From positions 29,698,001 to 29,762,000 of the forward strand of contig OZ241829.1 of the NCBI GenBank assembly GCA_965202585.1: 64,000 nt of DNA, written 5' to 3'. The notes under the pieces were generated by a model. It did no database searches, was not told where the DNA came from, and saw nothing but the letters and a program-made list of their open reading frames with translations. Each line of letters starts with the position of its first letter. The stretch's first letter is position 1. The stretch comes from Thalia democratica (lineage: Eukaryota). The translations under genes and the position numbers were made by a program. Below, piece by piece: positions 34,513-40,583 of this stretch.

Positions 34513-34700
34513 TTAAACGAGCACAAATTCAATCTGACCGTTGTATTCCAAATCACCAGTGAACTGCACGTCGTTTTGGTACTGGTGGTTGAAGTACTCG
34601 AACCTTTCGAGCGTGAACTCGTCGGCCGCCACAGTTTCCTTCTTGTATTCTTTGAACGACAGCTCGAACTTTGCCTTCACTCCGCTCGGGTTGTAAACTC
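34513..34700 (-). CDS. PL13-like domain, last exon (G-V-Y with the putative catalytic Tyr)
   Basis: GVYNPSGVKAKFELSFKEYKKETVAADEFTLERFEYFNHQYQNDVQFTGDLEYNGQIEFVLV*; completes the KF|GVY motif across the intron; internal phase-1 donors also exist. Confidence 0.8.
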
Positions 34701-35382
34701 CTTAAAAATACACGTGAGATGTGCAGGTATAAAGAAATGCAGTGACGAGGTTTTAAAAAGCTCAAAAAATAAAATGCAGCAGGGACACCAATAGCGTATC
34801 TGCTTTAAGAGATCTTAATCTAAAAAATGAATGGGGTTAAAAAATTATAAAAAAGCTATGATACTGTTTAAACGAATAAGAAAACTAATCTTAAAGATAT
34901 AAAGATTTTTATCGTTGTGTTAGTGTATAATAAAACTGTAAATTACTTTATTAAACACAAAAAAAATAAACAGAAAAACTTGATGTGCGTAGCAAAAAAT
35001 AGTTCAGTTTAGTTTATTTCGGTTTTATAAATTAATTCATAATTAGTTCAAATACAAAACTACTATTAAAAAAAAGTCTAATAACTCTGAAATAAGTGTG
35101 AATAGGCAACATTTTTTATCAAAAGTAAGTAAATATAAGCTGTAATAATTAATATTACTTTTATAATTATAACTAAACTTTTAAAAACTAAAATGTTCTC
35201 AAAACGGTAAGGTACGCATTTCACGTAAAGTACACACTTTTATATGGTTTCTTGGTGCGTACCCTACCAATGTCATTACTTTATTCGTTTTTAGATAAAT
35301 ACAAAATACAACCATGAGCTTTGTGACTAGTTTTTTTTTCAAAGCTGGTATTAATTGTTTCCAAACTTCTCGTGAAACCAAC

Positions 35383-35545
35383 CGAACTTAATGTAAGGAA
35401 CTCTCCCTTGCGCGTTTGCCCCGATAATAACCGGCAACTGATAATCGAGGTAAGAAGATTGCAGCTTGCCGTTAACTTTCAACTTCATTAAACCGTTCCA
35501 CGTTCGGATACCGGGGTCTCCAGTGCGACCGAGACGTTCCATTTC
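35383..35545 (-). CDS. PL13-like domain exon
   Basis: EMERLGRTGDPGIRTWNGLMKLKVNGKLQSSYLDYQLPVIIGANAQGRVPYIKF(G); phase 0-1; cf. heparinase I ILIGRNDEDGYYFKFG as recalled. Confidence 0.85.
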
Positions 35546-35829
35546 CTAGTTTAACTTTTAGCTATCATTTTAATGCTTGATGATAAACTTTAAACATTTT
35601 AATCTTCCTACTAGCTTAAGCTACTAGTATATAATTTCTCGTTAATTAGAAACTCTATAGACTTTATCTTATTTTATTAAAAAACAGGTCTAAAGTTCTT
35701 GTAAAAAACTTTCAATAATATTTTAATACAATTTGTTGCTTGTTTTTCATTTAAGTGACTGCACCTGAAATATCTAATACTTTATAAATTTCTAAGCTAG
35801 TTAAATTAAGTAAAAAAAAATCAAATAAC

Positions 35830-35934
35830 TTCATCTGTAAGGAGACCGTACTCGCCCCAATTTATAATCCACTCAAATTCAGTCCATTCCTGCTCTTCGA
35901 GAACATCTAGCGGAATTTCGTGAAGAATAATCGC
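35830..35934 (-). CDS. PL13-like domain exon
   Basis: AIILHEIPLDVLEEQEWTEFEWIINWGEYGLLTDE; phase 0-0; cf. TIAYKLPFADFPKDCWITFRVHIDWTVYG. Confidence 0.85.
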
Positions 35935-36223
35935 CTAAAAAAAAGAAAAAATAAAGAAAATATTTTTAGAAATAATAAAGAAATATCTTTTTAGCGTTTT
36001 ATGTTGAAAATAAAGTTTGAAACTAAGTTGAATTTCTTTTCGTTAGAACTTTTTAGAAAAACTTAACTCTAAATGGAAACAAGTCTGTCAATTTTAAATT
36101 TGCCCAGATATTATTATTTTACACAATAAACCCTTTTTTTTTGTTCTGATAAGATAAACTAGCAAAATGTTATGTAAGCTTAACTTTTAGTATAATATTT
36201 TAAAAACAAAGTGATAAAACAAC

Positions 36224-36339
36224 GTGTTGTTCGGCCCGACCGTCTTCAACGCACACAACTTTTTTCATCCCACTCATTCGGCACTTTCCTTCAGTTTTGA
36301 AGTACCTTTCGTCCGATCTTGCTGTCACTGTCAGCTTGC
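36224..36339 (-). CDS. PL13-like domain exon
   Basis: SKLTVTARSDERYFKTEGKCRMSGMKKVVCVEDGRAEQH; phase 1-0; cf. LFYIKANSDRKWLTDKDDRC. Confidence 0.83.
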
Positions 36340-37308
36340 CTGCAAGAGCAGTTTGTTGTAATTTAATTTTTACACGCTAGCCTAAAACAATAAAAATAAA
36401 TTGTTTACCAAAAAATTAAGCAGTGGTATGCTGTTCTATATAATTGTACACTTTTAAAAATGTTTCAAAAATCACATTATTACTAGTTTCAGCATCAAAA
36501 CATTTTCGTAATTTACCTTACATTAAGTTGTTTTGTAACGATATGTATATTCTGTTGTTTTTTTAAATGACCGCCTAGGGGCGTTAGATGATTGTTTATC
36601 AAATCACATAATAAAACTTTAATAGTTTTTGTTTTTACGCTCAGTTAGCCATAAGACCGTGCGGAGGGCACACCAAATTTAAGACTTTGAGACACCAATT
36701 GAACTTAAGAACTTTTTAATGATGTTCATTTTATAAGAACTTTATTTTATTTGTATTATTTTGTTGCATTGTGCTTAGTTTAGTCATCGTTGTGCATGAA
36801 GTACGACATATATTAAAACTCTGTATTACAAGTAAAACCTATTTTTGTATTTAAGATTGTGACATTCAGACAGTTTTAGAACGTTATTAAGAACATTTTT
36901 AGTTGTAGAATTTTGTGTCTACTTGTTGTGTTTATTTTCCCAGTTGTATTCTACTGATATAGTAGCTGCTCTATCACTTCTACTTTCTAGTTTCCATATT
37001 AATATTACTTTTTCAATAAACTCACTTCATTAAAGAAACTATACATATTAAGTTTATTACATATTTAATAGTTACTAAGTTAAACCTAATGAGTAAGGTA
37101 AATTCAGTAAAAGCCTTAAGAGCTAATCACTCAAAGCGTTCAGCTCAAAAAAGGGGACTTCCCCCAATTAAAAATAGTTCCTACCACTGGTTTAAGGCTA
37201 CAGTTTTACAAACAGAGTCATAGCTTATTTCGTATATAACTTCGTACACGTAAAAATCTAAAAATTGCAAACTAATTTCTATATTACATATCATTTCAAA
37301 CAACTAAC

Positions 37309-37389
37309 TCTTGTTCCTGTCGTAATGAACTGAAAGAAGGGGGTGTCCCCCTCTCTGAAAGCTTATTCGCTCCCCTCCCGCTTCGAAAC
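37309..37389 (-). CDS. PL13-like domain exon
   Basis: GFEAGGERISFQRGGHPLLSVHYDRNK; 81 nt, phase 1-1; cf. WLVEQGGYPPLAFGF. Confidence 0.83.
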
Positions 37390-37584
37390 CTGAACGCGTA
37401 GAATAATAATCAAATTAATCTGATTAACTTTTGTAGTTTCCTTAAAAGTTAACGTTTAGTATTTAATTTAGTATTAATACTAATAAACAGTTTCATACAC
37501 TATTTCAAAGATAAATTAAACACTTGTAAATAGACTTGAACATGGAGGCGATCACCACAAAAAAAATAGAAAAAAATCACCAAC

Positions 37585-37860
37585 CGGCCGCGTGCTCGCA
37601 CGGGAAATGGGAGCATCCCCTGAACAGCTCCTCATTGGTCAGCCGTATCGGAACGGGGTCTTCCCCCACGGTGATGACGCGAGGGTCGGGCGAGTTGTGC
37701 CACTGAGTGATCATCACCCGCCGCATGGCCGCTCCGGCCTCACCCGATTGGACGAGGTCTCTCAGTTTCATCTTGTACTTGTACACGTGGCTGGCGTGTC
37801 GCGTCATCGGCTCGTTGGCCGCCGGGCACAGCGTTTGGAGGAGGGGCGGCATGACCGGGC
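37585..37860 (-). CDS. PL13-like domain exon with QWH (putative catalytic His)
   Basis: SPVMPPLLQTLCPAANEPMTRHASHVYKYKMKLRDLVQSGEAGAAMRRVMITQWHNSPDPRVITVGEDPVPIRLTNEELFRGCSHFPCEHAA; 276 nt, phase 1-1; cf. ACPQG..YEFSVYIP..IFAQWHGMPDRTLVQTPQGEVKKLTVDEF. Confidence 0.88.
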
Positions 37861-38807
37861 CTGTGTGACGTAATAACGCTTGGGGTGATAATGTGTGACG
37901 TAAAATTTGTGTGGTAAGAATGGGTGATGTCTGATGAACAAACGAGTTTGATAAAATTTTGTTAACTTTAAATGACAGTGAAAATCTATATTGAAGATTG
38001 CTAATTTTTTTGTAACTGGTAGCAGGTGTGTTAAACATTGATTTTTTCATAATATTTAGTCAATACTTTTCTTGAAGTTTTGGAACTATTTGTTAGAATT
38101 TTAAGCAGTTTATTAAACTTATATCTTTTAATCATTTCTGCAATAAATCCAGTGAAAAATTTGATGAAATAGTTGTGAATAAAAACGTTTAGAGATGAGA
38201 TTGTAGAAGTATAACGACATATTTTCATACAAAAATTTTTCTAAACTTTAGCTTTTAAAACAGTTACAGCTAATGAAAAGTACATTAAAATAAAACTTAG
38301 ATAAACACTTTAATATTGAAAATTATTTCTCTATATCAATGGTCTTCAAGGCGTGCACATTTAGGTTAATTTGCTGTATATAAAAAAGTTACAATGGTTA
38401 AAAAAAATGCAAATGACGTTTTTTGTTTTTTTCTATGGGAAAAAGTTAATGATAACACAAACTAACAGTTTTTAGCACGTTATTCATATATTCTATCTCA
38501 TAAAACCAAAATAAATTCTTGTTCTTGATAACAACTTACATTTTAATAGTCTAGTTTGCAAATAATTTATTTTTCAGTAATTTAGTGTGCACAGTGTTTG
38601 AAAATATTAAAAACCAATGCTCTAGAGTCATTAAATGTTTACTTGACAACAACAAAAATTAAAAAGCTAAAATTGTTTTAAGGTATTAAAAATAAATTGA
38701 GAAGGTTTATTTAAAAGTTTTTAAACATTCAGTTTATAGTAGACGTTTTCTGATACTGTCGAAGTATCTGTTGAAAATAAAATAAATAATTTTAAAACAA
38801 AAAATAC

Positions 38808-38944
38808 TTTTTATAAGGAAATTGTTGTTTATATCATTGTTAGTGACGTTTTCTTTGAAATATTTTTCAGTTACAAAACACGTGCTGATCTCTATCCTGG
38901 ACTTTTCATCTTTTTTTTTATTATCCAAGTTGTCGTATACAAAC
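38808..38944 (-). CDS. PL13-like domain exon
   Basis: (R)FVYDNLDNKKKDEKSRIEISTCFVTEKYFKENVTNNDINNNFLIK; phase 2-1; cf. KGRAEFSYCYATSDDF. Confidence 0.8.
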
Positions 38945-39361
38945 CTAAAATAAATATGAAACTTTGCTTTTTTTACTCTAGTCGTTTAGCAGTCAAAAAC
39001 CGCTTACGTTTTTATTGAATTTTATATATCAACAAAACAAGTTTAAGCACAATAACTTTTTAAACAACTTTAAAATATTTGTATGATACCACGTTAGTTA
39101 ATTTTATAAAATTTTGGTTCTAAAACCTTTGAACATTTAATAGCTGTAAAAATGTCTACTCTTTTAAAGAGAAACAACATGAACAGCAACCAGTGAATTA
39201 AAGTTTTTACACACTACTACAATAGTTCTAGACATACTAATATAAACTAAGTTGAAAATAGTTATAATGTTTACAGTTTTTAGTTTTATAGGCTAAAAAT
39301 GAGAAAACTTGCACTTATAATCTATTCAGGTATAAGATATTTAAAACAAATGACGAAGTAC

Positions 39362-39479
39362 CTGTACTGATAGGAAGGTTCACTGTTTTCATTTATGGGA
39401 AAATACTTTTCAATGTAAAATTTTGTCTTTTTACTGTTTGAAATTTTCAGTAAAACAAAATTACCTGGAAGAACCTGTT
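39362..39479 (-). CDS. PL13-like domain, first exon
   Basis: EQVLPGNFVLLKISNSKKTKFYIEKYFPINENSEPSYQY(R); phase 1-2; cf. NQIIDGCWVAV...DGKPSYRF. Confidence 0.75.
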
Positions 39480-39681
39480 CTGTAAGTACATTAAATTTTT
39501 TTTTTTTGAAGAAACGTTCTTAGCTTTTTTGTTTTTTACGCCAAGTAATAAGTACACTTTATTTACAATCAGTAACATAATTTTTGATAAAAGTTTTAAA
39601 ATGCAATAATTGTAAAACATTTCTATAACTACATACGAAAATCCTACAAAGTTATCTCTTAGTTTCTGATTTACTTCAAAC

Positions 39682-39813
39682 CTTCCCTGACCAGTTTCAA
39701 GAACGGTCTCGATTTCGGCCACTTGTTGCAAGTGAAATTCGATGAGGCCGCCTTGAGACCGGTGCAGTCCCATATTTCACCAGATTTAGTTTTATTTCTC
39801 AACAGTTTAATAC
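39682..39813 (-). CDS. Linker exon between the EGF and lyase-like domains
   Basis: SIKLLRNKTKSGEIWDCTGLKAASSNFTCNKWPKSRPFLKLVRE; 132 nt, phase 1-1, open from the aaacag acceptor; the ORF track shows a different frame. Confidence 0.7.
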
Positions 39814-39940
39814 CTGTTTGCAAGGATTAGTAGATTAACTTTAAAAGAAAGCTAAAAAAAAACGTAAGTCAAATTAAAAGCGATCCTAGCTGTTTTTGTT
39901 TTAGAAAGATGGCTACTGTACGACTGGATAACCAATAACT

Positions 39941-40012
39941 GTGGTGTGAAACTCGATAACTAAAAGGTTTCTTCATACACCAGGTGCTTAAACCAGACTT
40001 TTTGGACGCTTT
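39941..40012. repeat. Short dispersed repeat, similar to 46035-46090
   Basis: Shared GTGGTGTG..ACTCGATAAC..AAA.GTTT.TTC.T.CAC.AGGT.CT.A core at both sites. Confidence 0.45.
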
Positions 40013-40457
40013 TTTTTTATCGTTTTATAACCAATATATACACACTGCCGTAGGGGATGTTCAACATCACTGGTTAAAAATATATACTACGGTCATCTAA
40101 AATGAATGCTGTAACAAATTAAACCTTATTTATAAATAAAAATTTTATATGTAAACAAAGTTGAGAACCTTAACAAAATATTTAACATTAAAAGAGTTTA
40201 GTTTGGGTTTTTGACATAAAGCAAGTTAAAAGAATATTCAATTTGTTTTTTACTTCTAACACAAAAGTACTACTTAAGTTTAAAAACCCTTTTATTAAAG
40301 TTTGTGTTAAACGCATACTGTGATTAAACTACTTTTACTTCTAAAGTAATATGCAATGGTCTTTTGTACAACTCTCTTCCTGAAACTTTGTTAACAAATG
40401 TAAAAAATAGTAACAGTTACCACATAAAATTTTTGCATGCAAAACAAACAAACTGAC

Positions 40458-40583
40458 TGCAACTCAACCCATCTCCTTGGAAACCAGGGTTGCACATACA
40501 CTTGTAATACTCCTTATTCTCGTAGTTGTATTTCAAGCAGTAAGCATCTGCGTGACAAAACTGACAAACGTCTTTTTCAAATC
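40458..40583 (-). CDS. EGF-like domain exon
   Basis: FEKDVCQFCHADAYCLKYNYENKEYYKCMCNPGFQGDGLSC: 6 Cys with a CxCxxGFxGDGxxC ending; 126 nt, phase 1-1. Confidence 0.9.

Follow-up and report, generated by a model that had tools for sequence, protein, structure and literature searches.

A putative heparinase I-like (PL13-type) lyase domain in a spliced, EGF-bearing gene family of Thalia democratica

We describe a gene on the minus strand of a 64,000-nucleotide stretch of the Thalia democratica genome (GenBank assembly GCA_965202585.1, contig OZ241829.1, positions 29,698,001 to 29,762,000 of the forward strand). The whole of this stretch is called the window below, and positions are those of the window. 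Comparisons of sequences and profiles suggest that the segment between 34513 and 38944, together with a short upstream exon, encodes the catalytic domain of a remodelled, domesticated lyase of the PL13 type, carried by a spliced animal gene with an EGF exon; we place the probability of this interpretation at about 0.6. The domain is likely to be catalytically competent and is probably an enzyme type that has no description in animals. At least 13 copies are present in the genome, three of them in tandem and at least ten of them diverged paralogues with about 40% identity, distributed over four chromosomes.

To our knowledge, heparin and heparan sulfate are cleaved by lyases in bacteria and by the hydrolase heparanase in animals, and the lyase route is not known outside microbes. 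In a literature search of incomplete coverage we found no account of PL13 genes from animals. The reference systems used here are heparin lyase I (heparinase I; CAZy family PL13) from Bacteroides thetaiotaomicron (BT4675; PDB entries 3IKW, 3ILR, 3IMN and 3INA) and HepI from Pedobacter heparinus. Exons of the animal gene are named N and A to F in the order of transcription, and its residues are numbered in the spliced model.

Homology to heparin lyase I

Alignment by hhalign of a profile of the animal family with 33 verified bacterial PL13 sequences gave a probability of 98.6%, an E value of 1e-15 and a score of 116 over 246 columns, figures that were obtained after exon-by-exon refinement of the paralogue models. 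Judged from these profiles, the animal domain is homologous to heparin lyase I (Pfam family PF14099), with which it shares only about 22% sequence identity. The bacterial comparators were gathered by a scan for the motif (Y/F)FKFGIYR. As a check on this set, the open reading frame (ORF) of locus L146 was found to be the protein of PDB entry 3IKW (E 1e-262), and long and short bacterial forms both exceeded the PF14099 cut-off.

Direct searches agree with the profile comparison. When the spliced model was run with phmmer against 87 motif-bearing bacterial ORFs and 4,564 decoy ORFs it matched the motif-bearing set only, and the outcome was unchanged when KFGVY was masked. A hidden Markov model (HMM) of the animal family finds 42 of the 87 motif-bearing ORFs (best E 6e-10), and in the reverse search the bacterial HMM detects all of the animal models. 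Over the whole animal genome PF14099 gives five weak matches. We note that the sole 'decoys' matched by the PL13 HMM were two adjacent ORFs at locus L128 which together make up one bacterial PL13 gene, suggesting a frameshift or a break in this gene.

A profile of exon B, built from the copies in this genome and compared with 177,635 PDB sequences, placed heparin lyase I in all of the top four positions (E about 0.09), and alginate lyase was not among the matches listed. Heparin lyase I was not found when a profile of the D and E exons was compared with the PDB. Exon B, the longest exon, was used in an exhaustive HMMER search, which returned only three repetitive bacterial surface proteins with DUF11 and lamin-tail repeats, treated as noise due to composition, and two short fragments from metagenomes (P0004 and P0005). 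The second of these, from a Tara Oceans marine metagenome contig of 1068 bases (L185, ENA ERZ908120), shares 42% identity with exon B and resembles a paralogue-type exon with flanking intron; its origin in a marine plankton metagenome suggests that a related animal was present there.

PL7 alginate lyases have a jelly-roll fold and motifs similar to those discussed here (QIH and YFKAG.Y), and we therefore asked how far a relationship to this family (PF08787) might account for the domain in place of PL13. The GVYN of the animal protein resembles the PL7 motif, and in the hhalign alignment with 27 PL7 domains QIH falls opposite QWH, and YFKAGNY opposite YIKFGVY. That alignment reaches a probability of only 9.7%, with an E value of 3e-3 and a score of 29, compared with 98.6%, 1e-15 and 116 for PL13; the baseline, taken from PL13 against PL7, is 2.1%. 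Furthermore, a search of the animal genome with PF08787 gives no match at E values of up to 10, and the tree sets the animal clade beside heparinase I. A PL7-type affiliation is in our view scarcely credible.

The nine non-redundant animal copies group in the tree as one clade (support 100/99). Its sister is the heparinase-I clade, with a short bacterial group lacking the thumb set apart (96/94). This placement is provisional, given a long animal branch and bacteria selected through a motif scan. The members of the short group are PF14099 proteins of about 260 residues from Alphaproteobacteria, Verrucomicrobia and others (for example L042 and L063) and belong to the same family (PF14099 E 9e-44). 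Compared with the animal family they give an hhalign probability of 98.2% and an E value of 4e-14; they keep Q(W/F)H and KFGIY and have no full thumb. The entire insertion that follows QWH is missing from these proteins; in the animal protein the first half of it is present. We know of no functional characterization of the short proteins.

Active-site residues

The original prediction, made from the letters of the window alone, proposed that the putative catalytic and substrate-binding residues of heparinase I are retained in this gene on separate exons. The spliced model bears this out, with the named residues distributed over the four exons A, B, E and F. Gln187-Trp188-His189 (37705–37697, minus strand, exon B), the tyrosine of GVY, Tyr357 (34695–34693, minus strand, exon F), and the arginine of KSRIE, Arg105 (38898–38896, minus strand, exon A), are located exactly where they had been placed, and the lysine of IKFG is Lys353 (35389–35387, minus strand, exon E). 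The codon of Gly355, in KFG|VY, is split G|GA by the intron between exons E and F (35383 and 34700–34699). The heparinase I numbering given in the prediction was also correct, the histidine of QWH having index 151 in the PDB chains.

Alignment by hhalign sets these residues on Arg83, Gln149 and His151, Lys353, and Tyr357 of the B. thetaiotaomicron enzyme, in which Arg83 and Lys353 belong to the substrate groove and Gln149, His151 and Tyr357 are catalytic. In exon A, Lys103, Arg105, Glu107 and Cys111 correspond to Lys81, Arg83, Glu85 and Cys89 within TKGRAEFSYC. The placement of Arg105 hangs on the profile–profile alignment, the single-sequence HMM match at this point being only about 6 bits, and hmmalign could not place the N-terminal half. 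In exon B, Cys146 (37828–37826) corresponds to Cys121, the equivalent of Cys135 in P. heparinus, Gln187, Trp188 and His189 correspond to Gln149, Trp150 and His151, and Asp193 (37687–37685) corresponds to the Ca2+ ligand Asp155. Further along the protein, Ser235-Asp236 superpose on the invariant Ser244-Asp245, Tyr239 falls on the Ca2+ ligand Trp248, and Trp282, Trp291 and Tyr294 fall on the invariant Trp292, Trp301 and Tyr304. Asn344 (35416–35414) corresponds to the Ca2+ ligand Asn345, with Ala345 in place of Asp346. Lys353 aligns with Lys353 and Tyr357 with the catalytic Tyr357, and the hmmalign posterior is maximal over KFG.Y.

The animal protein has in common with heparin lyase I the residues equivalent to Lys81, Arg83, Glu85, Gln149, Trp150, His151, Pro154, Asp155, Ser244, Asp245, Asn345, Tyr351, Lys353, Phe354, Gly355 and Tyr357, the cysteine equivalent to P. 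heparinus Cys135 and the first half of the thumb (PDPRVITVGEDPVPIRLTNEELF). The prediction that key positions were kept while their surroundings diverged is in agreement with the counts: 23 of 61 positions that are invariant in the bacterial enzymes are retained, against 30 of the 185 other aligned positions. Taken alone, QWH is not beyond chance, a rough estimate being that about one would be expected in a six-frame translation of 64 kb. The motifs as a set are beyond chance because they are collinear in one spliced frame, are conserved in 13 copies and fall on equivalent residues of heparin lyase I (E 1e-15).

The roles proposed for Gln149 and Tyr357 in heparinase I we take as established background. 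A role for His151 is supported by the heparin-bound structure 3INA, which differs from 3IMN by a histidine-to-alanine change at exactly position 151, the residue that had to be removed for substrate to be trapped. The title of Cordula et al. (2014) likewise states the involvement of a histidine and a tyrosine in heparinase I.

Gene family and selection

The three tandem units, each with an EGF exon and a lyase domain, are spaced 45–53 kb apart and comprise the gene in the window (34513–40583), L023 (G000:C5:29676400-29686399) and L024 (G000:C5:29774300-29784299). L023 is identical to the window copy over the aligned exons (exon B being aligned from its second base), which points to gene conversion, to a duplication of very recent date or to a copy doubled in the assembly. 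Each exon of L024 differs by 1–3.5% from that of the window copy.

Conservation across the family centres on the residues discussed above. The motif KSR(L/I)E(L/I)xxC is present in all 13 copies, and arginine, glutamine and histidine are kept throughout; the cysteine, glutamine, histidine and Asp155 equivalent are invariant in the 12 sequences of alignment A1. Exon F begins G(V/I)YNPSG, with the tyrosine kept, in each of the 11 copies in which it was located, and Arg105 and Lys353 are conserved in all copies. Intron positions are also common to paralogues on the four chromosomes, the acceptor of exon A and the glycine-splitting donor of exon E (G|GT) being at identical positions in all of them. 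In most paralogues D and E are united in one exon. L033 (G000:C1:49155200-49165199), which branches earliest and is the most bacterial-like paralogue, has the D/E intron in common with our gene, while the two exons are fused in the others; it keeps AQWHG and is the only paralogue to keep the Ca2+ motif GRND.

Comparison of the window copy with its sister L024 gave 14 synonymous and 6 replacement differences, corresponding to a synonymous divergence (dS) of 0.057, a replacement divergence (dN) of 0.006 and a dN/dS of 0.11 (binomial P against neutrality 2.7e-6). The dS value is near the intron divergence of 0.038. Older pairs of paralogues have dN/dS values of 0.34 and 0.13, and in deeper pairs the synonymous sites are saturated and the protein is kept. 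In independent genomic runs nine of 11 exon variants were synonymous and none fell in the codons of the named residues. We conclude that purifying selection maintains the window copy, which is not in decay. The claim of the original prediction that the gene encodes an active lyase under selection thus stands as regards selection, whereas activity is only likely.

The same data bear on whether the gene is a decaying insert acquired by horizontal transfer, a pseudogene or bacterial contamination, with the motifs as leftovers. One paralogue does have this appearance: L034 (G000:C5:17956500-17966499) has a dN/dS of 1.07 against L029, an in-frame stop just 5' of the KSR motif, KSRLGL in place of KSRLEL, and a D+E exon that is broken into two frames. 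From its sequence it looks like a pseudogene, and it provides an internal contrast for decay. The window copy, on the other hand, is intact over eight exons, with the dN/dS and P values given above. It shares its introns with its paralogues, contains a host repeat in one of them and was found in DNA runs of two studies, all of which makes decay or contamination very improbable. The word 'insert' in the original prediction is misleading for what is an old, multi-copy family with common introns, fused to an EGF exon.

The host repeat is about 285 bp in length and occupies part of the intron between exons B and C in each of the three tandem copies (36900–37200 in the window). Its candidate copies, with 87–89% identity, number at least 727 and are spread over all chromosomes, and a search of Rfam with the repeat gave no match. 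Read depth reaches about 90,000x in two introns, at 36500–37300 and at about 39900–40100.

Divergence from the bacterial enzyme

Several observations weigh against the interpretation of this domain as a PL13-type lyase, and we collect them here. About 52 residues of the bacterial protein (roughly 181–234), which form the distal thumb, are absent from the animal protein. With them go the lid residue Lys185, Glu222 as a ligand of Ca2+, and the counterparts of Lys199 and His203 in P. heparinus. The complete Ca2+ site of heparinase I consists of Asp155, Glu222, Trp248, Asn345 and Asp346 (PMC6688311). In the animal protein this site is incomplete: Asp155 and Asn345 are kept, Trp248 is replaced by tyrosine, the region of Glu222 is gone and Asp346 is replaced by alanine, two of the five ligands being lost. 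In addition, the bacterial invariant residues Arg156, Lys241, Lys252, Arg255, Arg344 and Arg358 are all replaced. At the level of the searches, the single exons of the window copy gave no meaningful match to Pfam or the PDB, being too short to be informative; against a PF14099 gathering cut-off of 29.9 bits the best single paralogue exons score 24 and 21.9 bits. The donors of this copy at 37585, 36224, 35830 and 35383 are weak (GTTGGT twice, GTTGTT and GTTATT), the same junctions in paralogues having the more canonical GTAAGT, GTGAGT or GTCAGA. Searches of sequencing runs with these exons returned genomic DNA runs only and no RNA evidence of splicing or expression, and for this reason the support for the exon model comes from phases, from GT/AG sites and from conservation among paralogues. 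Contigs from three of the genomic runs span the introns without splice joints.

The changes around the active site raise the question of whether the domain is still an enzyme. It could instead be a glycosaminoglycan- or carbohydrate-binding module of an extracellular EGF (and possibly CCP) protein, in which the 'catalytic' residues are kept for contact with sugar. The loss of the distal thumb with Glu222 and Lys185, the alanine at Asp346 and the replacement of several basic groove residues would all fit such a module, as would the fusion to an EGF exon and a possible run-on into downstream exons through a donor ahead of the stop codon. However, glutamine, histidine and tyrosine are kept together in every copy examined, at about 35–45% protein identity and with synonymous sites saturated, and all three residues are rarely needed for binding alone. 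Of the Ca2+ ligands, Asp155 and Asn345 are likewise retained. We consider a non-catalytic binding module unlikely, while still well within reason.

At the other extreme, the protein might be a strict functional orthologue of bacterial heparinase I, that is, an endolyase that depends on Ca2+ and acts specifically on highly sulfated heparin. The catalytic residues, the Arg83 and Lys353 equivalents and the first half of the thumb are indeed kept, and in the tree the heparinase-I clade is the sister group of the family. Set against this are the incomplete Ca2+ site, the missing distal thumb and the many replaced invariant basic residues. BT4675 needs sulfation for activity (PMC9067506), a requirement that presumably relies on basic contacts of this kind. 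So close a correspondence of function is improbable.

A short C-x4-C loop (CSHFPC, about 37600–37620) stands in the animal protein where the bacterial distal thumb was. A C-x(2-4)-C pair is conserved in the family (CSHFPC, CDGVC, CAGKC and CDGFC) exactly at the point of truncation, and these two cysteines may form a disulfide that caps the shortened loop. The animal gene also differs from that of bacterial heparin lyase I in being eukaryotic in structure, with at least seven spliceosomal introns, an EGF exon in front and a conserved tail of about 55 residues, none of which is present in the bacterial gene.

Proposed mechanism and substrate

If the domain is a PL13-type lyase, as we propose, the protein would be extracellular, a location suggested by its EGF domain. 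Its substrate would be an acidic polysaccharide containing uronic acid, cut by β-elimination: the glutamine would neutralize the carboxylate, and the tyrosine/histidine pair would abstract and donate protons, as proposed for heparinase I. Given the missing distal thumb, the loss of two Ca2+ ligands and the replacement of several basic residues in the groove, both the substrate preference and the Ca2+ dependence are probably unlike those of bacterial heparinase I. A heparan-sulfate- or heparin-like chain is our leading guess for the substrate; ascidians are reported to make heparin or heparan sulfate (PMC6627333).

Gene structure

The window is part of a chromosome-scale contig in a genome of 800 Mb. 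It is AT-rich, with an overall GC content of about 27%, and contains short GC-rich blocks. Read on the minus strand, these blocks make up a series of exons that agree in phase and are bounded by AG acceptors and GT donors, and the exon model was built from them by hand. The spliced model comprises 416 residues and is incomplete at its 5' end; its frame is intact, and its phases are consistent, across eight exons, with the EGF exon followed by the PL13-type domain over seven exons.

The EGF-like exon (40458–40583, minus strand) lies upstream of the lyase domain and contains six cysteines. It has an AG acceptor and a GTCAGT donor with matching phases, and scores 30.6 bits against Pfam EGF_3 (cut-off 28.5, E 4e-7). 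As it begins in phase 1, additional 5' exons must exist, although none was located. The lyase domain starts in exon N (39675–39813, minus strand; ...CNKWPKSRPFLKLVREGL), which ends in the phase 2 donor AA|GTAAAT, fits exon A in phase and has weak equivalents in the paralogues L025 and L027.

Exon A (38808–38944, minus strand) encodes KSRIEISTC and is supported by the presence of the motif in 13 copies, a conserved ttttag acceptor and the hhalign alignment. Its most probable 3' end, at 38808 (donor A|GTATTT) and so not directly behind the cysteine, was placed from the paralogues, which have canonical phase 1 GTAAGT or GTGAGT donors there. An end at 38880 (donor T|GTTTTG) was rejected, as paralogues carry GC at that point and the frame is conserved further on; the positions of the named residues are the same with either end. 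Exon B (37585–37860, minus strand) was defined by alignment A1 and hhalign and contains Cys146, Gln187-Trp188-His189, Asp193, the first half of the thumb and CSHFPC.

Exon C (36224–36339, minus strand; KLTVTARSDERYF...) carries Ser235-Asp236 and Tyr239; it was recognized in 11 copies by jackhmmer and aligned by hmmalign and hhalign. Exon D (35830–35934, minus strand; AIILHEIPLD...EWTEFEWIINWGEYG) provides core jelly-roll strands with Trp282, Trp291 and Tyr294. Exon E (35383–35545, minus strand), which ends ...IGANAQGRVPYIKF followed by the first base of a glycine codon, contains Asn344, Ala345 and Lys353, and its donor G|GTTGGT splits the codon of Gly355.

Exon F (34513–34700, minus strand) begins (G)VYNPSG, contains Tyr357 and ends in a TAA stop codon at 34515–34513. 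It includes the tail, about 55 residues past the bacterial C-terminus, that is conserved in paralogues of the family. We note a possible phase 1 donor, G|GTCAGA, eight codons ahead of the TAA (34513–34545) and a canonical GTGAGT right behind the stop; in paralogues exon F ends ...QHT and is followed by a G|GT donor. The gene may extend into further downstream exons, as these splice-site sequences would allow.

Implications

Tunicates hold other bacterial-type genes from ancient horizontal transfer, such as that for cellulose synthase. That gene resembles the one described here in that a carbohydrate-active gene of bacterial type has gained introns, become multi-exon and been fused to animal domains, and differs in the class of enzyme encoded. 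For the PL13-type family a broader history is possible, and we offer it tentatively: an animal lineage may have acquired secreted lyases of this type once from bacteria, expanded them and remodelled them by shortening of the thumb, alteration of the Ca2+ site and fusion to EGF, and may use them to cut its own heparin- or heparan-sulfate-like chains by β-elimination.

If the interpretation is correct, the family would clearly exemplify how a carbohydrate-active enzyme of bacteria has been domesticated, multiplied and re-engineered. Its natural variants, with a shortened thumb, a Ca2+ site that is partly lost and one paralogue that is still bacterial-like, would form a series with which to probe the substrate specificity of heparinase I, a property that matters when low-molecular-weight heparins are made. 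A selectively maintained PL13-type lyase in an animal would represent a second, mechanistically different route for the remodelling of sulfated glycans.

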